From NCBI RefSeq assembly GCF_036321535.1, contig NC_087452.1:34658001-34722000 (forward strand): a DNA stretch of 64,000 nucleotides. The letters are read 5' to 3'. The notes under the pieces are model-generated. The model had not been told where the DNA came from. It searched no databases and worked only from the letters and a program-made list of their open reading frames with translations. The stretch comes from Camelus dromedarius (lineage: Eukaryota). Every line of letters starts with the position of its first letter. Position 1 is the stretch's first letter. A program made the translations under genes and the position numbers. This document shows, piece after piece, positions 7,090 to 63,278 of this stretch.

Positions 7090-9083
7090 ATGGAGACCCA
7101 GAGGGCCAGCCTCTCCCTGGGCCGCTGGCCACTGTGGCTACTGCTGCTGGGACTAGCGGTGCCTTGGGCCAGCGCCCAGGCCCTGAGCTATAGGGAGGCG
7201 GTGCTTCGAGCTGTGGATCGCCTCAATGAGCAGTCCTCAGACCCCAATCTCTACCGCCTCTTGGAGCTGGACCTGCCGCCCAAGGCTGTGAGTCGGGGAG
7301 GGGCTGGGGAGGGAGGTGTCTCCTGCCAGGCTTGGCCACACTGTCCCTCCCTTTGCTCGTGCTGTACCTCCTGTCAGGAAGGCACCTCTCCCTCTAAGTG
7401 GGATCCCACCTCTACAGAAATCCTCCCAGAGCTGGGTCCCCTCCCCTTGTGAGAGCCTTCTGCCTGGCATCTCTGCTGTGGGAACAGAGCCCTGACAGCC
7501 CGCTCAGGCTCCAGGGACTCCTGGGGGCTCCAGGGATACGCTGGGGTCACTGGCTCTGGGATGTGACTTCCCTGCTTCCAGTCCCCTGTGCACCCCATTG
7601 TCTTCCCACCAGGGAAGGGCTGTGCTCAGCCTTGGGGTTCCAGTGACAAGGTCTTTCCCTGCAGGTGTTCCCTGACTTCCCTCAGCCCCTCCAAGGGGAA
7701 CTGCCCCTCAGGAGAGCGGGTCTGAGTTCCCCTCCTGCTCCCTGTGAGCCTGGGAGCACAGGACCAGGCTGTGTCCTCCTCCCCTCTGCACCCAGCCCCC
7801 AGCCCAGGGCCAGGCACATGTGAGGGGCTGTCAAGGGGGCTGTCCTGCTGGGGGCAGGGACACAGGTCACACAAAGGAGCATGAGCCTGAGCCAGTCTCC
7901 CCACTTTGATCCTTGAGCAGGACGAGGACCCAGATGCCCCGAAGCCTGTGAGCTTCACGGTGAAGGAGACCGTGTGTCCCAGGAGGACACAGCAGCCACC
8001 GGAACAGTGTGACTTCAAGGAGAATGGGGTGAGGCTGGGGGCTTAAGGTGCTGGTGGGTGCCTCCCAAGACCCGAACAGGAGGCTTGGGGCGGGTTGTGG
8101 TTAGCAGCCCCTGGGGTGAGGCTGGTAGCTGGGGGTGCTGGTGGATGCCTCCCAAGAACAGGAACAGGAGGCTCGAAGGTGTGGTGTTATTTGCAGCCCC
8201 TGGGGTGAGGCTGGGTGGTTATGGCTCAGGGGTTACAGTGTGACCTGGTGTCTCCCCTTCCAGGTGGTGAAACAGTGTGTGGGGACAGTCACTCTGGACC
8301 AGTCCAGGGACCAACAGGACATCACCTGTGATGAGGTGAGTGACCCCTTCCAGGCTGCAGAGGCTGCTGCTGGGTCTGGTTTGTGGAACATCCTTTGGAC
8401 CAATTCTCCTCTGTGCCATCCCTGTAGCGGCAGGAAAGCCCTCCTCCCCTGGCTCCCCCTCACCCGAGCCCCAGGTCTCCAGGCCGGGCTCTGCAATCCC
8501 TTAGAGCAGTGGTTCTCTCATTGGGCTCCCCATACAGGACGTGTCAGAACGGCAAAAATTCTCAGGCCCCACTCTGACGTACTGAATCAGAGTCTAGGTT
8601 GGGGCCCAGTAATTTGTCTTGTAAGAGCCCTTGTAAGGGATTCTGTGCTGAAGTTTAAGAGGCACTGAGTAGGGTAATGGGCTTTTAGCCCCTGCTTCTG
8701 TCCTGCTTTGCTGGGAAGGGCTTGTGCCCCTGGGAAGCCCCTTGTCATCTCTGGGTCTTGGCTTCCTCCTCTGTGAGTGAGTGTAGGGATTCAACCATGT
8801 GCTCCAAAGGTCACACCCAGAGGGTGAACGGGGGCCTCAGGGCTCCTGGGGTGGCACTGGGAGGGGGATCAGCAGGTGAGGACAGGGGGTCTTGGGTTGA
8901 CCCTGGTTCCGACCCAGAAGAAATCTGTTTCCTCCTGGTTCACAGCTTCAGAGTGTTAGGAGCATTCGCCGGCCACGGCTGCCAAGGCCAAGGGTGCCAC
9001 GTCCATATATCCCACCAAGGATACCAAGGCCAGTATTGCCGCCACCACGGTTTCCTATTCCAAGGTTTCCGAGAGGACGGTGA
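7090..9083 (+). CDS. CATHL: Cathelicidin gene 1, 171-aa precursor; predicted mature Pro/Arg-rich peptide [39 protein letters not shown](-GR), PR-39/VicBac-like
   Basis: Exons 7090-7287, 7921-8028, 8264-8335, 8946-9083, all GT-AG and phase 0. [13 protein letters not shown] signal, [21 protein letters not shown] and four cathelin Cys are present. LQSV precedes the peptide and G-R precedes the stop. Confidence 0.97.
8507..8667. mobile_element. MER5A-like hAT element in intron 3 of gene 1, shared by all seven genes
   Basis: CAGTGGTTCTC...GAGGCACTG termini and tactgaatcagagtct core. Copies at about 16628-16792, 25799-25964, 33988-34152, 40974-41124, 56452-56610 and 61797-61955. Confidence 0.75.
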
Positions 9084-9168
9084 ATGGTTTGCTGATAACT
9101 GTCCCATAAAGGCCGAAGGAAGACTACAGAGGGTTTGCCTGCCCCGGGTCAGGACCTGGACATCAAAA

Positions 9169-9174
9169 GATAAA
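9169..9174 (+). terminator. Variant polyadenylation signal GATAAA of gene 1
   Basis: Occupies the position (followed by ttttTATGAA) where genes 2-7 have AATAAA. Confidence 0.55.
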
Positions 9175-9214
9175 TTTTTATGAAAAAAATTTCTCCAGGC
9201 TTCAATTTTAATTG

Positions 9215-12200
9215 TGTCACCTGATCCCACACAGAGATGGGTGAGGCAGCTGTTCCTTCCAGGAGGGCAGGGGGAGGCAGCAGGGCCGGGAGGGACAGGA
9301 CAGGGCTCCATTCTCAAGAACCCCATGCCCTTCACACTCCCCCGCCCTCCTCCTCCTCCACCAAGTAGGGGCTTAAGGAGACCTAGTCTGTGTGCAGTGC
9401 TGCTGGGGATGCTGTTCCTGCTGGTATGGAGGTGACAGTCCAGGAGGACCAGGCCTCTTGTTAATCACTCAGGGAGACGCAGTTCACTCTCCTGCTGGTG
9501 GGCTCTAAGGTCAGCCTGCAGGTACAATGTGCAGACTGTTCCACTTCCCTCACAATCTGAACTCTGCAAGACTACCCCACCCCCGGCTTTTGCTCTGGGC
9601 ATTGAGACACATCAGTCTTTCTTCTGCGAGGTCTCAGATTTCAGATGTGGGCTTGTGTTCAGGGATCCAATGGTACCACAATTGGCACCATTAGAAGCAA
9701 GCCTCCTGCTCATCGGGGTGAAGGGCTCTGCCTGAGTGAGAGACACACACAGTGACACACAGGCCACATGTCTGTTTGCCTGGGGGTTTCAGACACTGTC
9801 CCTGTCCTGCCCACTCCCCACTCTGTAGCTGACCTTTGTTGGGGGGCAGACTGGAATCACGGGGGAGGCGGCAGTCCCGGGAGCAGCCTCAACCAACCAT
9901 CGCTGGGACATTTCCCTCATTGGTGGAAACGTGTCTTCTGTTCCTCACTCCTTGGGGGGCCCACTCCCAGATGTGTCCCCCCTCCCTGAGGTCCCCAGCT
10001 GGGTGGAGCCCCTGTCCCCACTTCAGTGACCTGTCTATTGACTTGTCCTCTTCTGATGTCGATTCTGCCCGGTCTCACTTCCCTATTTTTCTGCTGGTGC
10101 TTCGAAGGAATCGCCTCCCAGAGCACCTGCTTCCTCTTGAATGCTGGCCTGAGCTCTGCTCCTGGGCCGACCTGCACCAACACACAGAGCCCCGTGTGTC
10201 AGAGGGACAGCGGGCGGGACCGCGCAGAGCACGTGCTCTGTAATCTGTCAGGCTCGTCTGTTCTTGGGGAGCAGGTGGGGCTGATTTCAGGCAGGTTAGA
10301 GGAACCCATGCTTCTCACTCTACGTCACCCCAGGTTGAGGCAGGAAACCTCACAGAGGAAACCCAGGGACTGTGTCGTGTCTCTGCCACAGCATACAAGA
10401 CTGCAAGAGCTACTTGTTAAAATTTCAGGATTTTCTGAGATGGTCATTAAACTCTTGGTCGCTTGAAAGCAGACTTGGTGGAAGAATTTACAGCATGGAA
10501 ATCAGCAAATGCTACACGTCAGGCCCATCACAGCTGGTCCATCACTGTCCAACCTGAGAGAGGGCTCACTCATCAGGATGATATGGGCTGTGCTGATGTC
10601 ATCTGTTTGCAGTTGTCTCCCAGGATTGCTGATCCTGCTTCAGGAGGGTGGGACAAGGATGCTGATGGCTCTCAGGTGCCATATTCCACGGCTTCAAGGC
10701 CTCCCCAAGAGAAGCCTGGGGGTTTTGTCCTCTCTGCCCCCATTCTGTGGCTGGTGACTGACTATGAGGGGACATCAGAGCCCAGCCCCTGCCACAGTCA
10801 CTCCTAAAGCAGGGGTGCAATTCTGGTTCCTGGGCTTTTCTAGGTGAGGCTGAAGCTGGGCTCACAGGGAGCATCTCTGTGCTCAGCTCCTTCCTCTGCA
10901 CAACCCTGCTCTCCTCCCCCTCCTGCTGACCACACCCCTCAATTAATCACATGACTCTGAATTCCCAGCTCAGGCCCTGCTTCTAGAGAAGCGGCCTAGG
11001 ATGGCGGTGGAGCTGTGTGGAGCCCGGCCAGCTCATCCCAGGTGGCTCGGGTGTGGGGCCTGACGTGGAGCTGAGAGAGAGGAGAGGCAGAGGTGTGCAG
11101 GGTAGGGGTGCGGGAGAGGGGTTGGGGCGGGGCAGCGCTGGCAGCCAAGGGGCCCTGAGGAGTTTACAAAGTGCTCAGAGTAGGACAGGAGGCCGAGAGC
11201 CCGGGGCGATGACTCCTAGTGGTTTCCCGGTGTTTGTGCAGATGTGGAGGCCACGGACCTCAGTGGGGGCAGCCTCAGAGATTTGGGGGCACAGAAGTCC
11301 CATGCAGTGAGGGGAGGAGAACCAAGAGGTAAGGAAGAGGGGAGGCCTTGAATGGGGACACACAGGGGCTTCTCCTTCCCCCAGACCCCCTCTGTGCGAG
11401 GGAGGGACACTGGGCTGTTATCAGGCAAGGTCCTTGTTGATGTGGCCCTTGACCCCCATTTCTGAGGTCTCCAGAGTCATTTTCGGGGCCCCTATATGTG
11501 ACAGGGCACTTCACATTGTCATGAATAGGGCAGAGAAAGAGAATTCTGAGGAGTATGGACATCTGAAAGCCATTGCTCCTCTGCCTGTGTGGCCCTAGGC
11601 AGAAGAAGAGATCTTTCTGGGCCTTTGTCTATCTGTAATTGGGACCCACATAGCCTAATTTGAGAGGATGGTCAATGGCTTAGCTCGAGAAACAAGGTCG
11701 AGTACCACATAGGGGCTGAATCTGAGGCGGAGGCTGATGGAGTCTAGGAGACCATAGTTAGTCTGGGTCCATCTCACGGCACAGATCTGGCTCGTGTGTT
11801 GGAGCAGGGACCCAGAGAGACACTTGGAATCCCCATCAGAGCAGCAGGAGGGAAATACATGTCATTCTGTCCTGAGCGAGCAGAATTGGCCCGTCTGCAC
11901 GAGCCTTTAGCGTCTGGTCCTTACTAGTCAGCAGCTGACACAGTGGGGGGCCTCCAGGCTTGCTCTGCTCCGACTGAGGGATGCCCGTGCCAGTCACATC
12001 CCGAGTCCTGTTCCCCAGCCCCATGGACTCTCTAGCTTCAGCCCGAGAGTGGGGGTTCCTTGTGTCCCATTCGCACCCCGTGTTCTCCTGTGTGTCACTC
12101 TGCCCCTGTGCCTACCCAGCCAGAGCAGGGAAGGATGCTGACAGGGGAGACAGGAGTACACTGGGACTTTCAGGGCCCTGGCACTTCTATCTTCCTGGGC

Positions 12201-15200
12201 CTCTTCATTCACAGAATACTCTTAAAACTTGTATTATACAACTGCATTCATATAAACATGAATATAACCCAAGCTGCTTTTCATCTTATGTATTCATCAA
12301 TATGTCAGTGTTTTCATCCGTGATTTTAAACAATTAAAAGTAAAACTTTCTGTGGATCCCTAGATGTCTCAGGGGCTAGGAACGCTGCCTAGTGTGCTGA
12401 CCGATAAGTGGGTCCTGGCAGGTGACGATCCTGTAGGCGCCCAGACACGCCTGCAGACACTAAATGCCTTCTGCTGTCTTTTCCAGGATGACTTAACCTC
12501 GTGGTTCTCTTTCAGCTCCTAGTTTCAGCTGAATTGGTCCATGGGAAAGAGGAAGCTGATCCTGAGCGGAGGGTCCTGACCCTCACCCTTGACCCAAATC
12601 CCTGCCTTCACAGCACCATGGCTGCCATCGCAGGTCCCTGCAGAGGGCAGGGGGCAGGGGGCAGGGCCTGAATCCTTCCCCTTGTCCCTGTGAAAAGGAC
12701 AGGTGGTGGGTCATTGAGGGGCATGACTCCATGTCCCCAGTCTGTCATTTCTTGAGTAGGAGGTCCTTGATGGAATGACGTAGCCCATGGGTCTCATTTT
12801 CCTCATCAAATGGGCAGTCAGAGCTGGTGGAGATTTCCAAGGTTAGGGGCACAGTTTGGGGTTCTGGTCCAGTTCCATTGCTCTGGAGCCTCTGGAGTCT
12901 CACAGACAGGAAGGATGGTTGGGAGGAGAAAAGGAGCCGGGACGTCCAGATCATGGCTAATTTCCTGAGGTTGTTGGCACGACGGGTGCATGAGGGTTTC
13001 TCAATGATCAGATGTGGAGTCAGGGGCCAACCAACCTGGGGACAAGGGCAGAGGAGCCTTTCCTGAGAACACGTCTGCTCTGACAGGCTATGAGGACAAA
13101 CCAGGAAAGTCAGATGCTAGAGGCAGGGACAGCACACCCCCATCCAGGCAGTTGTAGTCTGAGGACCTGACAGGCGACATTCCAAAGACCCAGACTGTCC
13201 AAAGTCTGAGCAAACGCAAAGGTGCAGAGGCAGGAAAGCACAGAGAGGATTTCAAGGGGATCTGATACCCGGTCACCGTGGGTTTTGCTAGTTATTTTCT
13301 ACTGCAATCACCTCCTTTTCTTCCTCCTTCTTGGGAAAAGGATACAGCTTGACCAAGAGGCCACTGGGGCAACACCCGGACTGTGACACCAGGTTGCACA
13401 GAAGCCCCTCTCTCCTTCCTTCTCGAAGGGTGAGTGCGAAACCAGCACATCCGACCAGGCTGTTACCTTCTGAGGTGCCCCATTCCGTTGCCCAGAGTCC
13501 CCAGGTCACAGGTGGCCATGGCCTATCCCAGGCCTTCAGTCTCAGGGCCATTCCATGGGACACTGGATTAGAATTGGCATCTGGTCTCTGGGATCCTCTA
13601 ACACATCGGCTCATTCACTTTCCCAGCTGGACCCCCTCCTCCTCCCTCTCTGGCCACTCCATCCTGGTGTCTCAACCTGAGCCCTGGAGAGGGAGTACCT
13701 TGGGGACAAGTCAGAAGAGACTTTGTGAGGCTGTGGGAGCTAAGATGGGGAGTTGCTGTTTCTCTGGTTGAAGGTCAGATAAGGCTTCACAAAACGAAAA
13801 GTCACGGCAGTCAGAGGGATCAGGTGTAGCGATATGAGAAGAGCAGAGGCTCCGAGGGGCCTGAGAGGTTGGGGTGGACGTGGCGGCCTGACACAGGGTT
13901 TTGCAGGTGAGCACCTGAGGACAACCTGATCCAGACCCTGAGCCACTGACTCAAGGCGGGAGGTTTGATGGACCCCTGGACAATGGCAGGGAACACTGGG
14001 CTGTGGTGTGGGAAGAGCCTGGAACCAGAAAAGGTGGAGTCTGGAGGTTGTGGCTACACTTCAGAGGAGAGGAGATGGTGGTAGGACAGGGCAGGGGTGA
14101 CAGTGGGGACAGGGAGGGCCCTCAGAGGAAGGAGCAGGTGGGGTTCCCAGGCTCTCAGCTCAGGGCTCCCGTGAGGGCTCCTAGCCAACAGCCCCAGACA
14201 GCCCTGTGCTGACAACCAGGAGTGTTCACAGGAGTGTTGCCTCGGACCCACAGACCAGTGATGTGTGTCCCTGATAACTAGTATCTGAGGAAGGGATGTG
14301 CCCAGAATGCATGAGAACTGCTTTGAGAAGCTGTACAGATCACGTGTGCAAGCCCTGCAGTAAAAGTTTTATTAAAAGTTCAGTACTTAGATTAGACAGA
14401 GCAGGAGGCACCCGGGAGGCCAGGAAGTGGACCCAGGAAGGTGGTCCCAGGGGAGAATGGGGGAGGGGGCAGTTTCAGTAGACAGAGGGGTCCCTGGCAC
14501 CTGTGAAGGCAAGGACAAGGCTTCAGCATGCCCTTTGTATCATTCGAAAGCTGTTAAGCAGGCATGGACCTTGAGTTGAAAGAGGACAAATAGTGGGGTC
14601 AGAGTGTAGATGAGCCTTCTCTTACTGGCTGTCTGGGTAAGGGGAACAGTGTGCATCTGGAAGGGGCTGGGACAGGACATTTTTAGAGTGAAGAAGGCAA
14701 AGGAGAAGAATCCAGAAGAGGGGACAGTGGAGGAGATGCCCTGACTGGCTGAGGGCTGGGTCCGCAGAATAGGACGGTGTGGCCCTGATGTCTGCCTAGG
14801 GAGTGGATGGGTGTGAAAGGCACTAGATGGGGGTGGTCCTGCCATCTATTCATCATATGTTAACTGAGTGCCTACTGGGGGCCAGGAGGCCCAGGAGCTG
14901 GAGGTTGTGTGGTGAATACACTCTTTCAGCCTGATTCTGAGGAGATCACAGTGAGGAGGCCGAGAGGGTGTAGGACACAGCCATTCCCTCTGTCTCCTGG
15001 AGGACTCAACCCTGTGGAGCAACCCTGCCCATGAAACTCCCCATGGGGCCCAGGAGAGGCCGAGATGCTGTCAGGGAGATGGAGGAACCTTTTCTTCACC
15101 TTGCACAGGAGGCAGACCTCACCCACTGCCCAGCAATCCCCTGAGGCAAGAGCGGGGCCTGAGGCAAGTCCAGCTCACACCCTGGCCGGGGACAGGGATG

Positions 15201-18200
15201 GGGCAGGTGGGGAAGGCTCCTGCTTGAGCAATTGCATCAGGCCCAGGCTGAGCATAAAGGAGGGTCCTGTGGGCTGGGAGGAGGCAGACTCGGGGACCAT
15301 GGAGACCCAGAGGGCCAGCCTCTCCCTGGGCCGCTGGCCACTGTGGCTACTGCTGCTGGGACTAGCGGTGCCTTGGGCCAGCGCCCAGGCCCTGAGCTAT
15401 AGGGAGGCGGTGCTTCGAGCTGTGGATCGCCTCAATGAGCAGTCCTCAGACCCCAATCTCTACCGCCTCCTGGAGCTGGACCTGCCGCCCAAGGCTGTGA
15501 GTCGGGGAGGGGCTGGGGAGGGAGGCGTCTCCCGCCAGGCTTGGCCACACTGTCCCTCCCTTTGCTCGCGCTGTACCTCCTGTCAGGAAGGCACCTCTCC
15601 CTCTAGGTGGGATCCCACCTCTAACAGAAATCTTCCCAGAGCTGGGTCCCTTCCCGTCGTGAGAACCTTCTGCCTGGCATCTCTGCTGTGGGAACAGAGC
15701 CCTGACAGCCCGCTCAGGCTCCAGGGACTCCTTGGGGCTCCAGGGATACGCCGGGGTCACTGGCTCTGGGATGTGACTTCCCTGCTTCCAATCCCCTGTG
15801 CACCCCATTGTCTTCCCACCAGGGAAGGGCTGTGCTCAGCCCGGGTGTTCCAGTTTCAAGGTCTTTCCCTGCAGGTGTCCCCTGACTTCCCTCAGCCTCT
15901 CCAAGTAGAGTTGCCCCTCAGGAGAGCGGGTATGAGTTCCATTCCTGCTCCCTGTGTGCCTGGGAGCTCAAGACTAGGCTGTGTCCTCCTCTCCTCTGCA
16001 CCCAGCTCCCAGCCCAGGGCCAGGCACATGGGACGGGCTGTCAAGGGGGCTGTCCTGCTGGGGGCAGGGACACAGGTCACACAAAGAAGCATGAGCCTGA
16101 GCCAGTCTCCCTACTTTGATCCTTGAGCAGGACGAGGACCCAGATGCCCCGAAGCCTGTGAGCTTCACGGTGAAGGAGACCGTATGTCCCAAGAGGACAC
16201 AGCTGCCTCCGGAGCAGTGTGACTTCAAGGAGAATGGGGTGAGGCTGGGGGCTTCGGGCGCTGGTGGGTGCCTCCCAAGACCCAAACAGGAGCCTTGGGG
16301 CAGGTGGTGGTTAGCAGCCCCTGTGGTGAGTCTGGGTGTTTATGGCTCAGGGGTTCCAGTGTGACTTGGAGTCTCCCCTTCCAGGTGGTGAAACAGTGTT
16401 TGGGGACAGTCAACCTGTACCAGCTCAGGGACAACTTCGATATAACATGTAATGAGGTGAGTGACCCCTTCTGGGCTGCAGGGGCTACTGATGGAGGTGG
16501 TGTGTGAAACAGCCTTTGGACCAATTCCCCGCTGTGCCATCCCTGTAGTGGCAGGAGGGACCTCCTCCCCTGGCTCCCCTTTACCTGAGCCCCAGGTCTC
16601 CAGGCCGGGCTCTGCAGTCCCTTAAAGCAGTGGTTCTCTCAGTGGGCTCCCCTCTTGGGAACTAGAGAAAAAGGCTGATTCTCAGGCATGACTCAGACCT
16701 ACAGAATCATTGTGTGATGTGGAGCCCAGTAATTTCTATTTTAAGAGCCCTTCTGAAGGATTTCTGAGTGTGCTGAAGCTTGAGAGGCAGTGACTAGAGA
16801 CAGGACCTTTCTGCCCCTGCTCCCGTCCTGCTTTTCTGAGATGGGTTTGTGCCCCTGGGAAGCCCCCTGTCATCTCTGGACCTTGGTCCTCATCTGTCTG
16901 TGGGAGTGATGATTCAACCACGTGCTCCAAGTGACACAGACAAGGAGGTCTAATGGTGCCTCAAGTCTCCTTCGGTGTTCCAAGATGGAAGAATTTCAGA
17001 TGGGGAGGGATCTGGTCTTGTCCCTAAGTCAGTCCTCACAAGAATCCTGTTTCCTTCTGCTTCACAGCTCCAAAGTGTCGGGTTATTTGGCCCGATTCTT
17101 GGTATCGTCCGTGCCGGTGTGAAATTGGTTCTAGATAAGTTTGGCAAATAATCGGATAGATTGGTGATAAAATTCGCCCAGGGTAGAGTCCTAATGATCA
17201 CCTAACTCTGGCTCAGTTGTTCAAACTCTGGAAATAAATTCTTATGAATTTCAAATTCACCTGTCTCTTGTCCTACTCTTACCAGGGGTCCTTAACCCCC
17301 ATTGCCCTCTTGAGTGTGTGTGTGTGTGTGCGCGCGTGTGTGGTCACTTCCGTGAACACAGAGATGGGTGTGGCAGCTGTTCCTTCCAGGAGGGCAGGGG
17401 GAGGCAGCAGGGCCGGGAGGGACAGGACAGGGCTCCATTCTCAGGAACCCCATGCCCTTCACACTCCCCCGCCCTCCTCCTCCTCCACCAAGTAGGGGCT
17501 TAAAGAGACCTAGTCTGTGTGCAGTGCTGCTGGGGATGCTGTTCCTGCTGGTATGGAGGTGACAGTCCAGGAGGACCAGGTGGCTTGTTAATCACTCGGG
17601 GAGACACAGCTCTGTCTCCTGCTGGTGGGCTCTAAGGTCAGCCTGCAGGTACAATGTCCAGATTGTTCCACTTCCCTCACAATCTGAACACTGAAAGAGC
17701 CCATCCTTCCTGGCTTTTGCTCTGGGCATTGAGACACATCAGTCTTTCTCCTGTGGGGTCTCAGATTTCAGATGTGGGCTTGTGTTCAGGGATCCAATGG
17801 TACCACAATTGGCACCATTAGAAGCAAGCCTCCTGCTCATCGGGGTGAAGGGCTCTGCCTGAGTGAGAGACACACACAGTGACACACAGGCCACATGTCT
17901 GTTTGCCTGGGGGTTTCAGACACTGTCCCTGTCCTGCCCACTCCCCACTCTGTAGCTGACCTTTGTTGGGGGGCAGACTGGAATCACGGGGGAGGCGGCA
18001 GTCCCGGGAGCAGCCTCAACCAACCATCGCTGGGACATTTCCCTCATTGGTGGAAACGTCTCTTCTGTTCCTCACTCCTTGGGGGGCCCACTCCCAGATG
18101 TGTCCCCCCTCCCTGAGGTCCCCAGCTGGGTGGAGCCCCTGTCCCCACTTCAGTGACCTGTCTATTGACTTGTCCTCTTCTGATGTCGATTCTGCCCGGT

Positions 18201-18470
18201 CTCACTTCTCTATTTTTCTGCTGGTGCTTCAAAGGAATCGCCTCCCAGAGCACCTGCTTCCTCTTGAATGCTGGCCTGAGCTCTGCTCCTGGGCCAACCT
18301 GCACCAACACACAGAGCCCCGTGTGTCAGAGGGACAGCGGGCGGGACCGCTCAGAGCACGTGCTCTGTAATCTGTCAGGCTCGTCTGTTCTTGGGGAGCA
18401 GTTGGGGCTGATTTCAGGCAGGTTAGAGGAACCCATGCTTCTCACTCTATGTCACCCCAGGTTGAGGGAG
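9215..18470 (+). repeat. Segmental duplication, copy 1 of a ~9-kb block repeated ~17.36 kb downstream (about 26580-35850)
   Basis: Near-identical spurious ORFs recur at offsets of 17,356-17,382 bp (11981/29344, 12745/30101, 16736/34096, 17963/35345). The 3'-flank block also recurs at about 8.13-8.15 kb spacing. Confidence 0.9.
15299..17151 (+). CDS. CATHL: Cathelicidin gene 2, 153-aa precursor; predicted mature [21 protein letters not shown](-GK)
   Basis: Exons 15299-15496, 16131-16238, 16385-16456, 17068-17151 with GT-AG sites and four Cys. AATAAA at 17233-17238. Confidence 0.95.
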
Positions 18471-19419
18471 GTTCTACAGAGGAAACTAAGGGAATTACTT
18501 CTGTCCGCCGCTGGATACTTCATTGCGACAGGCAGAACAGAGACCGGGGGAGGATCTGAGCCACGTCACTGAGCCCCCCAGCCCCAGACAGGAGCCTGCA
18601 GGTGCTGTGGGGTCTGGGGGCCCTGTTGGGGATGGGTGCTGAGGCTCAGGCTTCCGAGGGCAGACCCTAGGAGTGGTCTGGGATTGGCAGTGTGGGGACC
18701 GCCTGAGAGGGCTGGAGCGCGGTAAGGGCTGAAACTGGGAGTGTGTGCGAAGGAATCGGTCTGTCATAACCCCCGTTATTAGGTTGCTGCGGAGGGAGGA
18801 GCGGAACTCCTCACTCTGCCTGGCCCGCTGGCCCCTGGGAGCTGTGGGAGGGCAGAGTGCTGGGGCAGAGGCGGGGCCCAGGTCTGAGCCCATTCTCAGA
18901 ATGAGCTAAGTTCAAGGTTGTTGTGTGGGTTTGGCCGCTGCAGCTGTTCAGCCTCCAAGACATCCGTTTACACCTGTGCATGAACAAGGTCCCTGTGCTC
19001 AGTGGGCAGAGTTGTGGGCTGTGATGCTTGCCCCGGAAGACAGCCCCCAAAATTTATCTTGTTCACTCTGTCTGTGCCTCCCTAGTGGTTCTAACTGGGG
19101 CCACAGGTGTGGACTTTCGCCCTCACTGGCCCTGAAATAGGTAAATGAACGGTGACTGTCCCTGCTGAGCAAGGCATCCCCTGCTTGGAGGTCACGTCCA
19201 CTGGGGAGAGATTTTCTATGGAGAGGAGGGGAGATGCCCTCCTCTCTCCAGCCCCATCTCACTGAGTTTGGTAACTGCTCTCAGAGCAGCTCTGGGACCC
19301 TTCCCATCGCCAAGGCAAAACCTGCTTCTGGGGTTGTCATAGTGACAACACTGTGAAGAGCACCTGGGCCCACGGAGTCCTACACCCATCGTGCCTCCTC
19401 CTCCTGCTCCTCCTCCCTC

Positions 19420-42587: not shown

Positions 42588-42591
42588 TTTC

Positions 42592-50225: not shown

Positions 50226-50846
50226 AGTGGTGATGCCACACTTCCCACAACACATGCAGGAGGCGCTAGAAGCTGATTTCCCTGTGCACTTGCCTAAAAA
50301 TCCTTGAGACCTTGCCCGCAGCCTTGAGCAAGCAGAGGGCAGGGGAGGGCCCAGGAAGGGAAGGAAGAGAGCGGGAAAACAAGGCAGAAGCGGACCCCAG
50401 AGCAGCTCTTGGGTGCCCAGAGTGCTGTTGGACTGTAGCCCAGAGTTAGAACTGAGTCTCCAAAAGCAATGGGCTGCAGGAGAGATGCAGGGCTGGCCAG
50501 GGTTGGGGGTGGTGGGGACAGACAGAGGGGACCAGGGAGCTAGTCTGAGAGAGAGAGAGGCCCCAGATGGGGCCATGGGAAACTCCACACACGAGCCAGA
50601 GCTCTGGATCCTGCCATCAACCCTGACTTGGCCAAGACCTCCTCCCAAGGCCACACCCCAACCCCGCCCTGGACCTGAGTTTCCTCCCTGCCCAAAGGAG
50701 ACTGGTGGAAGCCCTGGCTGCCCTGCTGACAAGAGTGCTGTGAGCTCAGAGGAGGTGGATGCTTGGGTGTCCTTTGTGCCCTGAAGGACCACATGCACAG
50801 GCCGCATCCTTGGACTCAGGTGGCCAGTCCTTGGAAAGAAACACAC

Positions 50847-52057
50847 TTCAGTGAGGTTTTTCATGGGCACACAGGTGACCATCACGGCAGGACCTCCTTC
50901 CACCATGGAGGGACCCCCCTGCTTCACCAGCTGCACGGACAGCAGGGGATCAGGCTGGTCTCCTCTTCATATCTTGAGTTTCACACCAACGCAGCATGGC
51001 TCCCAGCAGCCCCAGCTCTACCCTCCACAGTCCCTGCCACCCACCAGCCTTCCCAGTCTCCATCCCCCTCCAGCCTGCGATCCCAGCTCCCCAGACTCTT
51101 CCCTTGTTTGTTGTTTTAATCCGAGCTCCGTTTCAGAAAGGGAAGAAACTCCTAGGGAGGGAGGTTTTGCTGGAGACATGATCAGTGGTTCTCAGCTGGT
51201 GGGGAGTGGTCAGAAACGTGCCTTTAAAATCTCCTAAATTTCTTTTTAGAAATAAGCAAAAGCAGGTGAGACCTGGATCTGCTGAGCTGGACCTGGGATC
51301 CATCTGAGTGGTGGGACTGGGGAAATGAAATCTGTGGAAATTATATTCTGATCTCCAGTTCGTCCCTCCCCCAGGAGTTGGTCCCTTCTCAAGTCACTTT
51401 ACAAAGTGCATGGTAGATGTCAGAGCCTCTGGAGGGGCTGTTTCTACCTTCCCAAGGCATCACGAAAAGACTGATTGATCTACACTAACAACAAGCCAGG
51501 CTGTGGGGAAGGACCACAGAGCCACCTGGGGAGATGGAGGGGGTGTGCGCCTCGTGTGAGGTGTCCTGTCTGACTCCGTCCTCCTGGAATTTAATGTCTG
51601 GATAGGCTTGGCCTGCCTCCTGCCTGAAGCACACGGCCTCCAGGAGGCTGACCTGAGATGCTGGGCTTTGCAGGTCCTTGTCCTGGTAGAGGGGTGGGGA
51701 GGAGGTGCCCTCTGTGATGTACTTGAGGCATCCAGATCCTCAAAGGGGAGAGAATACCCTCTTAGGCTCTGGAAACCAGCCTGGCTTCTCTGCACCCGTG
51801 TCCCCAGTAAAAACCCACTCACAGGAATGGTACCCATGCCCACCCGTCTGCCCCACATCTGGGGCTGGGAGCCTGGTCTCTTCTGCAAAGCTGGGCATCC
51901 TCCCATTCAGCCTGCACCCTGGCCCAGCTCAACGTGTCATCCTGCTGGGACCAGCTGGTTGGATGTTTGCTGTCCTAGTTGATGGTGAGATCGAGCCTGG
52001 GCCTGGCTCAGGCTGATGTCCGTGGCCAGGGAGGTGGGTTCAGCTCAAGCCAGACTC

Positions 52058-52100
<43 letters not shown>

Positions 52101-52128
52101 CAGCCCCGGATGCCCGCCGAGTCTCCTG
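50847..52128 (-). pseudogene. Diverged cathelin-like pseudogene, copy B
   Basis: Exon 1 52128-51823 (306 nt, QETRRASGAV-L13-QSLA*...AQARSH..., GTGAGT donor). Exon 2 51682-51575 is exactly 108 nt with AG/GT borders: [36 protein letters not shown]. Exon 3 starts at 50930 after a cag acceptor: LVKQGGPSMVEGGPAVMVTCVPMKNLTE. No ATG; in-frame stops in exon 1. Confidence 0.75.
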
Positions 52129-55100
52129 GCTGCAGTGTGGCGGGTGCAGCCTCTGCTTGGTCTCCTGTCCTCCTGGGGTGGAGTAGGGCTGCCCTCCTGC
52201 CGGCTGCCTTCTCCTCCAAGCCCCGGGCCTGGGACATCCCAGCCTGGCTGAGGGGTTTCCAGGGTGACTTACCCTCGTGGTTCTCCCCAGCTCCTCACTT
52301 CACGTGAAGTGGTCAGTGGGAAAGAGGAAGCTGACCCTGCGTGGAGGGTCCTGACACTCACCCCCGGCCCAAGTCCCCACCCTCACAGCACCATGGCTGC
52401 CTTCCCAGGACCCTGGGGAGGGCAGGGGTGAGCCCAATCCCTCCCCTTGTCCCCGTGAGAGGGACAGCATGGTGGGTCAGTGGGAGGCATTGGGTCCATG
52501 TCTTGGATTTGCCATTTTCCGGGCAGAGGCTCCTTGTTTGAGTGATTTACTTGGGTCTCATTTTCCTCATCCACTGGCCAACTCAGAGAGCTGGCGGGTG
52601 TTTCCCACAGTTGTAGGAAGGGCAGACTGGGGTCCAGCTTTCATTCCCCTGGAGTCTCGTGGACAGGAAGGCTGAAAGGGAGGAGCAAAGGAGCGGTGGC
52701 CATGGAGGACCAGTGCTCACTCCTGGAGGTTGTTGGGGTGACGGGTGCATGAGGATTTCTCAAGGACCAGATGTGGAGTCAGGGGTCAACCCTTCAGGGG
52801 ACAAGAGCTGGGGTGTATTTCCAGAGAAGACCTCCACTCTGATAGATGTGAGGAGAAACCAGGAAAGCCGGACGCTGGAGGCAGGGACGGCACACCCCCA
52901 TCCAGGGAGTTGCATCCTGAGAACCTGGCAGGGGACACTGCAAGGACGCAAGGAAGGATCGGGAAGGGGACTTCAGTCTGAAGTCTGAGCAAATCAAAGG
53001 TGCAGAGGAGGAGAGCACAGGGAGGATTTCAGGGGGAACTGGTACCCGGTCACCATGGGTATTGCTAGGTATTTTCTCCTTTAATCACCTCCTTTCCCTC
53101 CTCTGACTTGGGAAAAGGACACAGCTTGACCAACAGGCCACTAGGGCAGCACCCAGACTGTGACACCAGGTTGCCCAGAAGTCCCTCTCTCCTTCCTTCT
53201 CCAAGGGTGATTACCTAAGTAGCAGCGTCCACCACAGCTGTCACTTTCTGAGGGGCTCCGCCCACTTTCTGAGGGACTCGTTCCACAAGTCCCATAGGCC
53301 AACCAAGTCCCGGAAATATCCCATTCCTCACAGCCACAGGGCCATTTCATGGCCTCTAGATGCCTTTATCATTTTGACTTATTCTCCCAGCTGTGCTCTC
53401 TCTCCTTCCAGCTCAGCCACCCCAGCCTAGAGTATCAACCAGACCCCCTGACAGGCTATCAAATCAGAAGAGACTTCCTGAGGCCGTGGGAGCCAAGAGA
53501 AGGAGGTCGTTGTGTGGTTGGAGGTTAGATAAGGTTAGGAAGGTCACAGCAAACAGAGGGATCAGGTGTGGAGATGTGAGAAGAGCAGAGACTTCAGGGG
53601 TCTGAGAGGTTGGGATGGATGTGGTGGCCTGACACAGGGTCCTGCAGAGCTGGGGCTGCGGTCCATGGGGACATCCACATCCAGACCCTGACACAGATGT
53701 CTAAGGAAGGAGATAAAATGGCCAAGTCAAAGGTTTGATGGACCCTGGACAATGATAGGGAACGTGGACTGTGGTGTGGGTGGAGCCTGGAGCCAGAGAC
53801 GGTGGAGTCTGGAGGTTGTGGCCACACTTCAGAGGAGAAGGGGGTGTGGTAGGACAGGACAGGGGGGACAGGGGGACAGGGAGTGCCCTCAGACGAAGAA
53901 GGAGCAGGTGGGTGTTCCCAGGCTCTCAGCTCAGGGCTCCTGTGGGGGCTGCCAGCCAACAGCTCCAGACAGCCGTATGCGGACAGCCAGGTGTGTTCAT
54001 GGGAGTCTTGACTCAGAGACACAGACCAATGATGTGTGTCCCTGATAACTGCTATTTGGAGAAGGGATGTGCCCAGGAATGTGTGAGGACTGGGAGGAGA
54101 AGCAGCTCAGATGCACCTGTGGAAACCCTGCGTATTATGAGGAGGGTCCTGGAAGGAGACAGAACAGGAGCTGCCAGGGAGGTGGGAGGTGACCCAGAAA
54201 AGCAGAATTGGGGGAGAAAGGGAAAGAGGGCTGGCTGTTCAGGAGGGCTGAGGGATCCCCAGCACCTGTGAAGATAAGGAGAAAGCTTCAGCACTGGCCA
54301 CTGGATCCAATGAGGCATGGCCAGACTGCAGTGGCCTTGAAAGTCAGGGAGGGCAAAGAAATGGAGTGAGTGGTGTAAGAGACTTTCCTCAGGCTGGGCT
54401 TGGAGAAGTGCCAGGGCAATAGGTCATGCCTGGTGTGGGCTAGAGATGGGACATTTTTAGACTGAGAAAGGCAGGGGAGAGGGGACTGATGGGGACTGAT
54501 GGCAACTGGCTGAGGGCTGGGTCCACAGAACAGGATGGTGTGGCCTTGAAGTCTCCCTAGGGAGTGGGTGGGTGGGAAGGGCACTAGATGGGGGTGGTGC
54601 TGTTATCAATTCATCAAATGATAACTGAATACCTACTGGGTTCCAGGAGGGCCTAAGGCTGGAGGTTTAGTAGTGAATAAAAATCACACGGGAGGGGCTG
54701 TTGAGGGGGCTGTACTGCTTGGGGGCAGGGAGACAGATCAGACAAGGAAGCACTCTTTCAGCCTCATTCTGAGGAGGTCACAGTGAGGAGGCAGAGAGGG
54801 TGTAGGACACAGCCTGGTTCCTCCATCTCCTGGAGGACTCAACCCTCTGGAGCAACCCTGCCCATGAAACTCCCCATGGGGCCCAGGAGAGGCCGAGATG
54901 CTGTCAGGGAGATGGAGGAACCATTTCTTCACCTTGCACAGGAGGCAGACCTCACCCACTGCCCAGCAATCCCCTGAGGCAAGAGCGGGGCCTGAGGCAA
55001 GTCCAGCTCACACCCTGGCCGGGGGCAGGGATGGGGCAGGTGGGGAAGGCTCCTGCTTGAGCAATTGCATCAGGCCCAGGCTGAGCATAAAGGAGGGTCC

Positions 55101-55131: not shown

Positions 55132-56989
55132 ATGGAGACCCAGAGGGCCAGCCTCTCCCTGGGCCGCTGGCCACTGTGGCTACTGCTGCTGGGACTAGCG
55201 GTGCCTTGGGCCAGCGCCCAGGCCCTGAGCTATAGGGAGGCGGTGCTTCGAGCTGTGGATCGCCTCAATGAGCAGTCCTCAGACCCCAGTCTCTACCGCC
55301 TCCTGGAGCTGGACCTGCCGCCCAAGGCTGTGAGTCAGGGAGGGGCTGGGGAGGGAGGCGTCTCCCGCCAGGCTTGGCCACACTGTCCCTCCCTTTGCTC
55401 GCGCTGTACCTCTTGTCAGGAAGGCACCTCTCCCTCTAGGTGGGATCCCACCTGTCACAGAAATCTTCCCAGTGCTGGGTCCCCTCCCGTTGTGAGAGCC
55501 TTCTGCCTGGCATCTCTGCTGTGAGAACAGAGCCCTGACAGCCCGCTCAGGCTCCAGGGACTCCTGGGGGCTCCAGGGATACGCTGGGGTCACTGGCTCT
55601 GGGATGTGACTTCCCTGCTTCCAGTCCCCTGTGCACCCACCCCATTGTCTCCCAACTAGGGAAGGGCTGTGCTCAGCCTGGATGTTCCAGTGACAAGGTC
55701 TTTCCCTGCAGGTGTCCCCTGACTTCCCTCAGCCCCTCCAAGGGGAGCTGCCCCTCAGGAGATGGGGTCTGAGGTCCCCTCCTGCTCCCTGTGCGCCTGG
55801 GAGCCCAGGACCAGGCTGTGTCCTCCTCCCCTCTGCACCCAGCCCCCAGCCCAGGGCCAGGCACATGGGACGGGCTGTCAAGGGGGCTGTCCTGCTGGGG
55901 GCAGGGACACAGGTCACACAAAGAAGCATGAGCCTGAGCCAGTCTCCCCACTTTGATCCTTGAGCAGGACGAGGACCCAGACACCCCAAAGCCTGTGAGC
56001 TTCACGGTGAAGGAGACCGTGTGTCCCAGGAGGACACATCTGCCACCGGAGCAGTGTGACTTCAAGGAGAAAGGGGTGAGGCTGGGGGCGCTGGTGGATG
56101 CCTCCCAAGGACCCAAACAGGAGGCTCCAGGAGAAGGCTTGCAGCCCCTGGGGTAAGGCTGGGTGGTTATGGCTCAGGGGTTCCACTGTGACCTGGAATA
56201 TCCCCTTCCAGTTGGTGAAACAGTGTGTGGGGACAATCACCCTGGACCAGGTCAAGGGCCAAATGGACATCGCCTGTGATGAGGTGAGTGAGTCCTTCCG
56301 GGCTGCAAGGGCTACTGGTAGGGGTGGTGTGTGGAACAGCCTTTGGACCAGTTCCCCTCTGTGCCATCCCTATAGCAGCAGGAAAGCCCTCCCCTGGCTC
56401 CCCCTCACCCGAGCCCCAGGTCTCCAGGCCGGGCTCTGCAATCCCTTAGAGCAGTGGTTCTCTCAGTGGGCTCCCCACCCAGGACTTGTCAGAAAGGCAG
56501 ATTCTGTTTCCACTGAGACCTACTGAATCAGAGTCTGGGGTGGGACCCAGCAACTTGTATTTCAACCAGCTGAAGGGGATTCTGACTGTGCTAACGTCTG
56601 AGAGGCACTGACTAGAGTAATGGGCTCTCAGCCCCTGCTCCCCTCTGGTTTGCTGGGATGGGCTTGCGACCCAGAGTAGCCCCTTGTCATCTCTGGACCT
56701 CGATTTCCTCATCTGTGTGTGGATGTAAGGACTCAACCACATGCTCCAAAAGTCACAGCCAGAGGGTGAACTGGGGACACAAGGCTCCTGGGGTTACCCA
56801 GTTAGGGGAGGTGCCCAGGTGTGGAGATGTCTGGTCTCACCTCTGGTTCCATTCCCCATATGTAACCCGGTTCTTCCTACTTCACAGCTCCAGAGTGTTG
56901 GGTTTTTTAAGAAGGCACGTAATAAGCTTAAAAACGCCTGGCGGAAGGTTGGCCCGATAGTTGGCCCGTTACTCACTTTCTTCGGGTAA
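55132..56989 (+). CDS. CATHL: Cathelicidin gene 6, 159-aa precursor; predicted mature [28 protein letters not shown](-G), BMAP-27/28-like
   Basis: Exons 55132-55329, 55968-56075, 56212-56283, 56888-56989 with GT-AG sites. AATAAA at 57055-57060. Confidence 0.97.
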
Positions 56990-60800: not shown

Positions 60801-61218
60801 ACACTGCAATCAGCTGGGGGACAGAGCACCGCCCAGTGAGCAGGATCTGGGCAGGGTGCTGACAGCACCTACTACCCATTGCCCTGCACAGGGACCAGTA
60901 TCCCTCTGAGCACTTCAGAACCAATGGGGTCAAAACTGAACTGTCACCTCCCCCCACGCTCATCTCATACCTATACCAGGACACTGAGCAGCCCGTGACC
61001 ATGCTGTCAGGAAGCCCCCCATTGTCCACCTGTCAGAGAATCAACCTGCCTCATCCTCTCTGCAGTGACCCCACCCCAGTCAGCCCGACACTGTCAGCCT
61101 CTGGGACAGCCTTAGTTCCATTGTTTCTTACCTCCTCTCCCTTTGGCCACTGCCCTGGGGATAAGTGTCCTTGCTGAGGTCCCTCACCATTCACCCAACA
61201 TGAATTCACACACACAGA

Positions 61219-61262
<44 letters not shown>
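57845..61262. repeat. Inverted repeat, arms about 57845-58430 and 60645-61262, between convergent genes 6 and 7
   Basis: Both arms give the same spurious ORF (MDNGGLP.S.VTGCSVSWYRYEMS) on opposite strands. Confidence 0.9.
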
Positions 61263-61433
61263 CATATCACAAGGCCTCCCAGATTTAAGGACACAATCTT
61301 GGTAAGTGGGAGGAGGGGAGAAAAGTGAAATTGAAGCCTGGAGGAAGTTGTTTTCACCAGAATTTATTTCTCAGAGTCTAGTAACCTGAGCCAAGACAGG
61401 AGGACCCTGAGGACTCTTTCCTGGACTCACAAT

Positions 61434-63278
61434 TCATAAAAACCAGCTGGCTATACGGATGACTGTCGGGACATACTTGATCGCCTTTCTTACTATCCTG
61501 CCCAAACCGACACTCTGGAGCTGTACATGGGAAGAAACAAGTTACTTGTGAGAAATGAACCCAGATGTAAGAACAGAATCTTTCCCATTTACACACCTCC
61601 CCTACCTGGGTGACCCCAGGGGCCTTGTGTCCCCAGTTCACCATCTGGCTGTGACCTTGGAGCATGTGGTTGAATCCCTACACCCACACACAGATGAGGA
61701 AACCAAGGTCCAGAGATGACAAGGGGCTTCCCAGGGTCACAAGCCCATCCCAGCAAAGCTTGACAGAAGCAGGGGTTGAAAGCCTTTTACTGTGGTCAAT
61801 GCCTCTTAAACTTCAGCACAGAATCCCCAGGAGGACTTCTTAAAATACAAACTGCTGAGCCCCACCCCAGACTCTAATTCAGTAGGTATGAGTGGGGCCT
61901 GAGAGTCTGCTTTTCTGACAAGCCCTGGGTGGGAAGCCCACTTAGAGAACCACTGCTCTAAGGGATTCCAGAGCCTAAGTGGGAGATCTGGGGCTACAGT
62001 GAGCGGGGTCCAGGGTACAAGGGCTTCCCCTAACCTGGATGGGACATAAGGTAATTGGTCCAAAGAATATTCCACACACCACCCCCACCAGCAGCCCCTG
62101 CAGCCCAGAAGGGGTCACTCACCTCATCACAGGTGACTGCCAATTGGCCCGTGATCTGGTCCAGGGTGACTGTCCCCAAACACTGTTTCACCACCTGGAA
62201 GGGGAGACCCCAGGTCAGACTGGAACCCCTGAGCCATAACCACCCAGCCTCACCCCAGGAGCTGCTAACCACCCCCTGAAGCCTTCTGTTAGGGTCCTGG
62301 GGAGGCACCCACCAGTGCTCCCAGATCCCAGCCTCACCCCATTCTCCTTGAAGTCACACTGCTCCGGTGGCTGCTGTGTCCTCCTGGGACACACGGTCTC
62401 CTTCACCATGAAGCTCACAGGCTTTGGGGTGTCTGGGTCCTCGTCCTGCTCAAGGATCAAAGTGGGGAGACTGGCTCAGGCTCATGCTTCTTTGTGTGAC
62501 CTGTCTCCCTGCCCCCAGCAGGACAGCCCCCTTGACAGCCCGTCCCATGTGCCTGGCCCTGGGCTGGGGGCTGGGTACAGAGGGGAGGAGGACACAGCCT
62601 GGTCCTGGGCTCCCAGGCGCACAGGGAGCAGGAGGGGACCTCAGACCCGCTCTCCTGAGGGGCACCTCCCCCTTGGAGGGGCTGAGGGAAGTCAGGGGAC
62701 ACCTGCAGGGAAAGACCTTGTCACTGGAACCCCAAGGCTGAGCACAGCCCTTCCCTGGTGGGGAGACAAAGGCGTGAACAGGGGACTGGAAGCAGGGAAG
62801 TCACATCCCAGAGCCAGTGACCCCAGCGTATCCCTGGAGCCCCCAGGAGTCCCTGGAGCCTGAGCGGGCTGTCAGGGCTCTGTTCCCACAGCAGAGATGC
62901 CAGGCAGAAGGCTCTCACAATGGGAGGGGACCCAGCACTGGGAAGATTTCTGTGACAGGTGGGATCCCACCTAGAGGGAGAGGTGCCTTCCTGACAGGAG
63001 GTACAGCACGAGCAAAGGGAGGGACAGTGTGGCCAAGCCTGGCGGGAGACGCCTCCCTCCCCAGCCCCTCCCCGACTCACAGCCTTGGGCGGCAGGTCCA
63101 GCTCCAGGAGGCGGTAGAGATTGGGGTCTGAGGACTGCTCATTGAGGCGATCCACAGCTCGAAGCACCGCCTCCCTATAGCTCAGGGCCTGGGCGCTGGC
63201 CCAAGGCACCGCTAGTCCCAGCAGCAGTAGCCACAGTGGCCAGCGGCCCAGGGAGAGGCTGGCCCTCTGGGTCTCCAT
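61434..63278 (-). CDS. CATHL: Cathelicidin gene 7 (inverted), 154-aa precursor; predicted mature [28 protein letters not shown]-29-like
   Basis: Minus-strand exons 63278-63081, 62445-62338, 62194-62123, 61520-61434 with GT-AG sites and four Cys. AATAAA (TTTATT on +) at 61363-61368. Exon 4 was translated by hand; it is absent from the ORF track. Confidence 0.95.

Follow-up and report, generated by a model that had tools for sequence, protein, structure and literature searches.

Within a window of 64,000 nucleotides of the Camelus dromedarius genome (contig NC_087452.1, positions 34,658,001 to 34,722,000; all coordinates below are those of the window), we found seven cathelicidin genes, G1 to G7, each with four exons and all intact. 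G1 to G6 lie head to tail on the plus strand, with start codons at 7090, 15299, 24491, 32660, 39668, and 55132; G7 is inverted at the end of the array and starts at 63278 on the minus strand. Every one of the seven reading frames is open, and the 42 splice sites are without exception intact, of the GT-AG type, and in phase 0. Exons 1, 2, and 3 measure 198, 108, and 72 nt in every gene and are followed by an exon 4 of variable length, giving predicted precursors of 153 to 244 amino acids. Runs of N occur only at 336 to 515, 2889 to 3042, and 3109 to 3240, and the array itself is free of gaps. The count of seven refers to this window, not to the genome. The original prediction had placed seven genes at these positions, with a conserved signal/cathelin carrier and a different peptide in every exon 4, and this is borne out by the gene models and the identities. 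It had also named two extra cathelin-like copies, "A" and "B," which gained no support: the rest of the window yielded no cathelin exons, and a sensitive tblastn search over 1 to 7000 and 42000 to 55000 gave a best E value of 0.007, the matches being of low complexity.

The first three exons encode the carrier. In G1, the Pfam Cathelicidin profile (PF00666; gathering cut-off, 21 bits) scored 51.8, 59.6, and 27.6 bits on exons 1, 2, and 3, covering profile positions 1 to 36, 38 to 73, and 75 to 97 of 101, and the identity of the other six genes in exons 1 to 3 is 83 to 99%. Exon 1 is the most uniform part of the genes (mean pairwise nucleotide identity of 0.989; range, 0.975 to 1.000), with 61 of its 66 residues invariant. 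All seven predicted precursors keep the cathelin cysteines 85, 96, 107, and 124, and all begin with the N-terminal hydrophobic core LW(L)4GLAVPWASA followed by QALSYREAV, which, on direct reading, looks like a signal peptide; the matching alpaca sequences were annotated as such with SignalP by their authors (PMC9146984). Exon 4 opens with LQSV in six genes, the exception being G5. Between −160 and the start codon, the promoters of the seven genes are nearly identical and have CATAAA at −46, and an AATAAA lies 48 to 156 nt past the stop codon in six genes, G1 having GATAAA instead. Each predicted prepropeptide consists of a signal peptide, a four-cysteine cathelin-like prodomain encoded by exons 1 to 3, and the C-terminal peptide of exon 4. 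By analogy to cathelicidins that have been studied, cleavage after the valine of LQSV would free the peptide in six of the seven genes, and peptides that end in G, GK, or GR (G1, G2, G4, and G6) may be amidated at the C terminus. The peptides belong to known functional types: those of G1, G3, and G5 are proline rich, and those of G2, G4, G6, and G7 are amphipathic or hydrophobic, of the membrane-active type.

The seven exon 4 peptides are all distinct and mostly unalignable. G1 (7090 to 9083, plus strand; exons 7090-7287, 7921-8028, 8264-8335, and 8946-9083) encodes a Bac7/PR-39-like, Pro/Arg-rich peptide of the CamBac type, with 41 residues and a GR end. Its N terminus (12 residues, letters not shown) contains R-RP-R-LPRPR, matching the consensus (R/K)XX(R/Y)LPRPR given for proline-rich ribosome inhibitors of the Bac7/oncocin type (PMC9146984), and judged by this match, the motif is of the ribosome-binding type. 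G3 (24491 to 26357, plus strand; exons 24491-24688, 25325-25432, 25576-25647, and 26229-26357) encodes a Pro/Phe-rich, Vp38-like peptide of 38 residues with a (PPX)4 motif at its center and RRRR at its C terminus; a (PPX)4 peptide of this type has been described as having no similar known peptide (PMC9146984). G5 (39668 to 41740, plus strand; exons 39668-39865, 40487-40594, 40731-40802, and 41384-41740) is the prophenin-like gene, the exon 4 of which encodes 118 residues with repeats of (N/E/Q/R)FP(P/L)P, 50% Pro, 19% Phe, and a low net charge. It deviates from its neighbors in a fifth cysteine (R44C), an exon 3 donor that reads GTTAAT, and the junction ...CDK|ARRFRP, which has no LQSV.

Among the remaining genes, G2 (15299 to 17151, plus strand; exons 15299-15496, 16131-16238, 16385-16456, and 17068-17151) encodes a hydrophobic peptide of 23 residues that ends in FGK, an amidation signal; its exon 4 is of the G4 type but cut short by the frameshift of a 1-nt deletion. 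G4 itself (32660 to 34547, plus strand; exons 32660-32857, 33491-33598, 33745-33816, and 34428-34547) encodes an amphipathic, Vp35-like peptide of 35 residues with an RPG end and a helical hydrophobic moment of 0.47. PDB searches with the G1 and G4 peptides gave no meaningful match. The 29-residue, Vp29-like helix-hinge peptide of G6 (55132 to 56989, plus strand; exons 55132-55329, 55968-56075, 56212-56283, and 56888-56989) ends in FFG and is identical to CdCATH; its sole PDB match was a weak one to 2KET (bovine cathelicidin-6, BMAP-27; residues 1 to 25 versus 1 to 24, E = 0.19, 15.1 bits). G7 (61434 to 63278, minus strand; exons 63278-63081, 62445-62338, 62194-62123, and 61520-61434) encodes an amphipathic, Vp24-like peptide of 24 residues with a hydrophobic moment of 0.66, for which no PDB match was found at E values up to 10, in a PDB copy that may or may not hold a SMAP-29 chain.

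Most class labels of the original prediction are reasonable in the light of these features: Bac7/PR-39-like for G1, in which the N-terminal consensus is present; a short hydrophobic amide class for G2, with its 23 residues and amidation-signal end; Pro/Phe-rich for G3; MAP-34-like for G4, which belongs to a group aligned in the literature with BMAP-34; and prophenin-like for G5, with long tandem Pro/Phe-rich repeats after the cathelin domain. MAP-27/28-like for G6 may also be called reasonable, albeit the PDB match to BMAP-27 is weak. The label SMAP-29-like for G7 found no support in the PDB search; being amphipathic, the peptide may nevertheless act like SMAP-29-type peptides without kinship in sequence.

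All of these peptides are already catalogued. Panteleev et al. (2022, Membranes 12:515, PMC9146984) mined the genomes of all living camelids, using criteria for a functional gene like those applied here, and sorted the cathelicidins into nine subgroups, with the peptides listed in Table S2. The G2, G6, and G7 peptides are letter-identical to C. dromedarius entries of that table: G2 is the "23-residue cathelicidin (MAP-like)" of C. dromedarius and C. bactrianus, and G6 and G7 are the Vp29-like and Vp24-like entries of three Camelus species. G1 (CamBac), G3, G4, and G5 match the entries in length, motif, or repeat order, save for single letters, which we attribute to the machine-read PDF of the table; the 41 letters of G1, compared to 42 in Table S2, may be a real difference of one residue. 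G4 has the SIRNRV of the Vp35-like entry of C. dromedarius, where C. bactrianus has SIRKRV, and the order of repeat units in G5 is that of the long C. dromedarius prophenin-like entry. Two further peptides of the Camelus list, one of 22 residues that is PMAP-23-like and a second one of the Vp35-like type, have no gene in this window.

With regard to experiments, the G6 peptide was synthesized and assayed as CdCATH by Al-Mamari et al. (2026, Front Immunol 17:1745714, PMC12872550), together with CdPG-3, and both were reported to be active against Gram-negative and Gram-positive bacteria. CdCATH is identical to the G6 peptide in 29 of 29 positions and CdPG-3 to the G4 peptide in 32 of 35; hence, it was CdPG-3 that was tested and not the form encoded by G4 itself (identified by a stretch of 13 residues, letters not shown). 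In-depth studies exist of VicBac, the alpaca ortholog of G1, and the name CamBac belongs to a peptide that was assayed on Escherichia coli. In the literature searched, we found no experimental work on the peptides of G2, G3, G5, and G7, and it is these catalogued camel peptides that the map singles out. No cathelin peptides were found in the mass spectrometry supplement of the 2026 paper. Small sequencing runs containing 24 to 71% of the G2 or G5 exon 4 and 3′ untranslated region words were considered as RNA, but this reading was rejected, since no run was on record as RNA; one sample comprised many runs of 50 to 100 million letters, each with different loci, a pattern that, with the partial word shares, fits noisy long-read DNA equally well. 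The original prediction, by which the peptides of G1 and G6 alone would resemble camelid peptides described before, therefore fails for description, with all seven in Table S2, but comes close for experiments, which cover the G1 lineage, G6, and a relative of G4; annotation is complete for the seven peptides, whereas characterization is not.

How a nearly constant carrier came to be joined to such different peptides may be read from the distribution of divergence along the genes. Mean identity between paralogs is 0.916 in the 500 nt upstream, 0.989 in exon 1, 0.945 in intron 1, and 0.947 in exon 2 and then falls to 0.856 in intron 2, 0.826 in exon 3, and 0.783 in intron 3, until exon 4 is unalignable. 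Synonymous divergence follows suit, with 0.014, 0.085, and 0.179 in exons 1, 2, and 3. Beyond the genes, identity is high again. Self-BLAST revealed a 9.3-kb block at 9229 to 18493 that is 96.1% identical to 26592 to 35877 and includes an apparently homogenized intergenic spacer, copies of which follow G1 (9229 to 13778), G3 (26539 to 31137), and G4 (34685 to 39297), with a partial copy after G2 (17356 to 18493). In sliding comparisons of the same gene pairs, the spacers are 0.96 to 1.00 identical, compared to 0.58 to 0.76 for intron 3 plus exon 4, and the jump in identity lies 150 to 250 nt past the stop codon, just beyond a (TG)n tract. Between G2 and G4, the part encoding the mature peptide has a pN of 0.314 and a pS of 0.056, while the flanks differ by 2 to 7%.

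In this one genome, the pattern points to homogenization around an old, fast-evolving exon 4 island. Homogenization, by gene conversion or unequal exchange, would be strongest at the promoter, exon 1, and the intergenic spacers, and exon 4 with its surroundings would be an old island that escapes it and changes by an excess of amino acid substitutions, by frameshift (as in G2), and by repeat expansion (as in G5). The contrast between constant carrier and variable peptides would then have two causes, the homogenization of the flanks and the escape of the exon 4 island. We consider it very likely that the window holds most of the C. dromedarius cathelicidin cluster, as seven paralogs with homogenized carriers and spacers and exon 4 islands that escape homogenization.

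Exon 1 may instead be nearly identical only because the signal/cathelin protein is under purifying selection, or because the genes were duplicated very recently, with no gene conversion at all. Indeed, exon 1 is highly conserved across artiodactyl species too, and pN/pS stays under 1 both in exon 2 and in the part of exon 1 that encodes cathelin. The alpaca prepro sequences in the supplement of PMC9146984 also look very similar (machine-read text). However, synonymous sites and introns follow the 5′-to-3′ gradient of the protein, and noncoding spacers are 96 to 100% identical in gene pairs whose intron 3 shows 58 to 76% identity; the near identity of the carrier therefore exceeds what protein constraint alone would give. 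A single date of duplication is insufficient as well, since divergences differ more than tenfold within 1 kb, and the peptide lineages are common to alpaca and llama and hence older than the flanks appear. We regard selection or recent duplication alone as very unlikely and prefer homogenization of the flanks. That the near-identical spacers, the copy number, or the gene order are artifacts of assembling a repetitive region would also explain why some 200-nt spacer windows are 99 to 100% identical, and Table S2 cites earlier camel assemblies in which the genes are spread over many separate small contigs (PMC9146984). This explanation deserves hardly any credence, for every peptide was recovered independently from two or three assemblies of the dromedary as well as from two further Camelus species, the array has no gaps, and the copies are not exact duplicates but are set apart by scattered substitutions and indels.

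A further question is whether all seven genes work. G5 has the extra cysteine R44C, a weak GTTAAT donor, and no LQSV, G2 carries a frameshift that truncates a G4-type peptide, and G1, with GATAAA, lacks the canonical AATAAA; furthermore, none of the runs containing G2 or G5 exon 4 words is on record as RNA. With such a donor, junction, and polyadenylation signal, one or more of the genes could be poorly expressed, and some copies, chiefly G5, G2, or G1, might be unexpressed or unprocessed pseudogene-like duplicates in a working library of fewer than seven. We think this unlikely. Every frame and splice site is intact, C. bactrianus has an identical G2 peptide and Lama species a 23-residue relative of it with the same end (PMC9146984), and all camelids retain the G5 type, the alpaca prophenin gene sharing with G5 not only the GTTAAT donor but also the acceptor (Fig. 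S4 of PMC9146984). As these species parted many millions of years ago, the retention of such features argues for function.

Compared to the camelid repertoire described before (PMC9146984), the genes are the same, with the same 2-kb layout of four exons, TATA-like box, and polyadenylation signal, and the subgroups matched are VicBac/CamBac, Vp38-like, prophenin-like, Vp35-like, Vp29-like, Vp24-like, and 23-residue MAP-like. That catalogue lists the peptides by contig accession, without a physical map; the window adds order, orientation, the duplication unit, and the identity profile. CdPMAP-23, which also comes from PMC12872550, is not encoded in this window. With all seven peptides catalogued in 2022, the cluster is an ordinary one for its gene family, and its value lies not in a new peptide but in a gap-free physical map of seven camel genes, with a two-gene duplication unit, one inverted member, and homogenized flanks set against old, fast-changing exon 4 islands. 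A bolder view, which we hold to be possible yet rather doubtful, is that of a "cassette" locus, in which recurrent homogenization keeps promoter, carrier, and spacers nearly identical but halts sharply next to a (TG)n tract just past each polyadenylation site, so that old, fast-evolving exon 4 islands persist, and in which the G2, G3, G5, and G7 peptides have activities or targets that are perhaps undescribed.

Cathelicidins, a main class of mammalian host defense peptides, are used as templates in the design of antibiotics, and those of camelids (VicBac, CdCATH, and CdPG-3) are under active study. The original prediction had pointed to the cathelicidin expansions established in pig and ruminants, and its structural reading is correct: the clusters of these animals likewise have a common prepro region on exons 1 to 3 and a variable exon 4, and proline-rich and helical peptides occur there side by side in a tandem array. 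The camel peptides, however, are sequences separate from those of pig (PR-39, prophenins, and PMAPs) and ruminants (Bac5, Bac7, BMAP-27/28/34, and SMAP-29). The repeat of the prophenin-like G5 has a pentameric unit, xFP(P/L)P, where the unit of pig prophenin is a decamer.

A cluster of seven cathelicidin genes (G1 to G7 in window order), as first predicted, is confirmed by copy number, gene models, profile matches, conserved cysteines and tblastn. A six-frame scan revealed seven copies of the signal/cathelin exon 1, with start codons at 7090, 15299, 24491, 32660, 39668 and 55132 on the plus strand (G1 to G6) and at 63278 on the minus strand (G7), and the first and last of these are exactly the predicted limits, 7090-63278. 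Each exon 1 is followed by an exon 2 of 108 nt, an exon 3 of 72 nt and then exon 4; GT...AG and phase 0 are found at every exon boundary, all frames are open, and the predicted precursors of G1 to G7 have 171, 153, 168, 165, 244, 159 and 154 residues. Exons 1, 2 and 3 of G1 are each above the gathering cut-off of Pfam PF00666 (Cathelicidin) and jointly span positions 1-97 of the 101-position profile, and the four cathelin cysteines are kept in 7/7 copies. Further cathelin exons in the window were not detected by tblastn, loose settings included, and the assembly gaps (336-515, 2889-3042 and 3109-3240) are all outside the array. The last 160 nt upstream of the start codon are almost invariant among the seven genes, with CATAAA at −46. 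Intron 2 of G1 (8029-8263) has 235 nt compared to 136-146 nt elsewhere in the array; in its translated frames, one short stretch occurs twice, suggestive of an internal tandem duplication (about 89 nt).

The structural reading of a constant carrier (signal peptide and cathelin pro-domain) with differing exon 4 peptides was right: seven distinct peptides are encoded, and exon 4 opens with LQSV in six of the seven genes. The peptide of G1 has 41 residues, is Pro/Arg-rich, starts with [12 protein letters not shown] and ends in GR; that of G2 (23 residues) is hydrophobic and ends in FGK; that of G3 (38 residues; 47% Pro, 24% Phe) has the central motif [12 protein letters not shown] and a C-terminal RRRR; and that of G4 (35 residues) is amphipathic and ends in RPG. 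G5, the gene without the LQSV site, encodes 118 residues with xFP(P/L)P repeats, G6 a 29-residue peptide with a Gly/Pro hinge and the C-terminus FFG, and G7 a strongly amphipathic 24-residue peptide (hydrophobic moment, 0.66). No support was found for calling the last of these SMAP-29-like, and the label MAP-27/28-like for G6 is based on a weak BMAP-27 match (E 0.19). The camel locus is a textbook cathelicidin cluster, in which one pro-region is common to all genes and the C-terminal domain varies, and it is expanded as in pig and ruminants.

The members of the cluster are already catalogued for C. dromedarius, and the idea that several peptides are undescribed was therefore wrong. Full-text searching for parts of the peptides retrieved Al-Mamari et al. 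2026 (PMC12872550) and, through it, Panteleev et al. 2022 (PMC9146984), who searched the genomes of all seven extant camelids and reported 62 cathelicidins, of which 35 are unique, grouped into nine structural subgroups. To count as functional in that study, a gene of about 2 kb needed four exons with intact splice sites, together with a TATA box and polyA signal; the window copies share these features. In Table S2 of PMC9146984, the peptides of G2, G6 and G7 are letter-identical to C. dromedarius entries, the G4 peptide carries the dromedary-specific SIRNRV (SIRKRV in C. bactrianus), the repeat units of G5 are arranged as in the long prophenin-like entry, and the CamBac and Vp38-like entries for C. 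dromedarius correspond to G1 and G3. The G4 and G5 matches are diagnostic at the species level and point to C. dromedarius as the most likely source of the window. The table was compared as machine-read PDF text, in which letters are visibly dropped in proline runs and the "38-residue" group is printed as 35 letters; single-letter differences for G1, G3, G4 and G5 are attributed to this machine reading, although a genuine one-residue difference between G1 and CamBac is possible. The main text of PMC9146984, with 41 and 38 residues and a (PPX)4 motif, fits G1 and G3 exactly. The published camel list also has a 22-residue PMAP-23-like and a second Vp35-like peptide, neither of which is encoded in the window; hence, "seven" is the count for the window. 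The window adds little beyond this: a physical map, and a view of exon-4 islands set in homogenised flanks.

Averaged over all pairs of the seven genes, identity is 0.916 in the 500 nt upstream, 0.989 in exon 1, 0.945 in intron 1, 0.947 in exon 2, 0.856 in intron 2, 0.826 in exon 3 and 0.783 in intron 3, and exon 4 is mostly unalignable. Synonymous divergence follows the same slope (0.014, 0.085 and 0.179 in exons 1, 2 and 3) and pN/pS in exon 3 is near 1; therefore, constraint at the protein level alone cannot account for the near-identity of exon 1. After the gradual fall from exon 1 to exon 4, paralog identity returns abruptly within about 50 nt; this jump lies 150-250 nt past the stop codon and directly follows the polyA signal and an intact or degraded (TG)n tract. 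Self-alignment revealed a segmental duplication of 9.3 kb (9229-18493 versus 26592-35877; 96.1% identity), which is a repeated two-gene unit, G1-G2 versus G3-G4, and a spacer of about 4.6 kb that recurs after G1, G3 and G4. In sliding windows, these spacers are 0.96-1.00 identical, whereas the corresponding gene pairs reach 0.58-0.76 over intron 3 and exon 4. A more-than-tenfold spread of neutral divergence within 1 kb cannot be explained by a single duplication date, and the exon-4 lineages are old, since they are common to alpaca and llama (PMC9146984, Table S2). The conclusion, inferred from this one genome, is that gene conversion or unequal exchange has homogenised the flanks and the 5′ gene part, and that the exon-4 island has escaped. 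Despite the 96.1% identity of the 9.3-kb block, divergence between G1 and G3 is deep across intron 3 and exon 4. The (TG)n microsatellite or degraded remnant (17313-17341, 34673-34724 and equivalents after G3, G6 and G7) is found 60-100 nt past the polyA signal in most genes, where paralog identity returns to over 90%; G1 is without the tract.

The exon-4 island itself evolves fast and in several ways. G2 and G4 are closely related (intron 3, 93% identical; flanks, 96.5-98%), yet their mature-peptide codons have a pN of 0.314 versus a pS of 0.056. In G2, at 17068-17186, exon 4 is a G4-type exon 4 in which a 1-nt deletion after codon 27 leads to a TAA stop, and the old C-terminus, IGDKIRPG-stop, is still legible downstream in the +2 frame; the short peptide of G2 is thus the product of this deletion. 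Lama species have a 23-residue peptide that ends in the same way (PMC9146984, Table S2), and therefore, the truncation is probably old. Exon 4 of G5, in turn, is enlarged by repeat expansion.

G1, G2 and G5 have features that could reduce their output and be read as decay. G2 is a truncation, G5 has an extra cysteine and a GTTAAT donor and is without the LQSV site, and the polyA signal of G1 (9170-9175) is GATAAA compared to AATAAA in the other six genes, in an otherwise alignable context. However, reading frames and splice sites are intact in all seven genes, the G2 and G5 types are retained across camelid species (PMC9146984, Table S2), and the GTTAAT donor of G5 is also printed for the prophenin gene of alpaca (PMC9146984). 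Small sequencing runs contain part of the exon-4 words of G2 and G5, but none of them is recorded as RNA, and noisy long-read DNA would give such a pattern as readily as RNA.

Experimental work is on record for three lineages, those of G1, G4 and G6. For G1, the alpaca ortholog VicBac is known in detail as a Bac7-like inhibitor of translation (PMC9146984), and a peptide named CamBac, putatively that of G1, has been assayed on E. coli in single-cell assays. The G6 peptide, CdCATH, and CdPG-3, which is identical to the G4 peptide at 32/35 positions, were synthesised and tested (PMC12872550). In the literature searched by names and sequences, there were no experimental studies of G2, G3, G5, G7 or their alpaca counterparts, and for these four the milder claim of peptides without a functional test appears to hold.

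Between G5 and G6 lies a gammaretrovirus-like endogenous retrovirus remnant (44100-46510, plus strand) with a Gag matrix (44100-44663), Gag p30 fused in one open frame with the integrase zinc finger and core (44543-45913) and an MLV-type integrase C-terminal domain (45950-46507), all on the plus strand. It looks internally deleted, since its scanned ORFs gave no match to protease or reverse transcriptase. Two distant stretches, 3593-6709 and 51579-54679, are 81% alike over 3.1 kb and have in common a short poly-leucine open frame (3972-4139 and 51958-52125, both minus strand); with the seven cathelicidins as queries, sensitive tblastn revealed no convincing likeness there (best E, 0.007-0.15).
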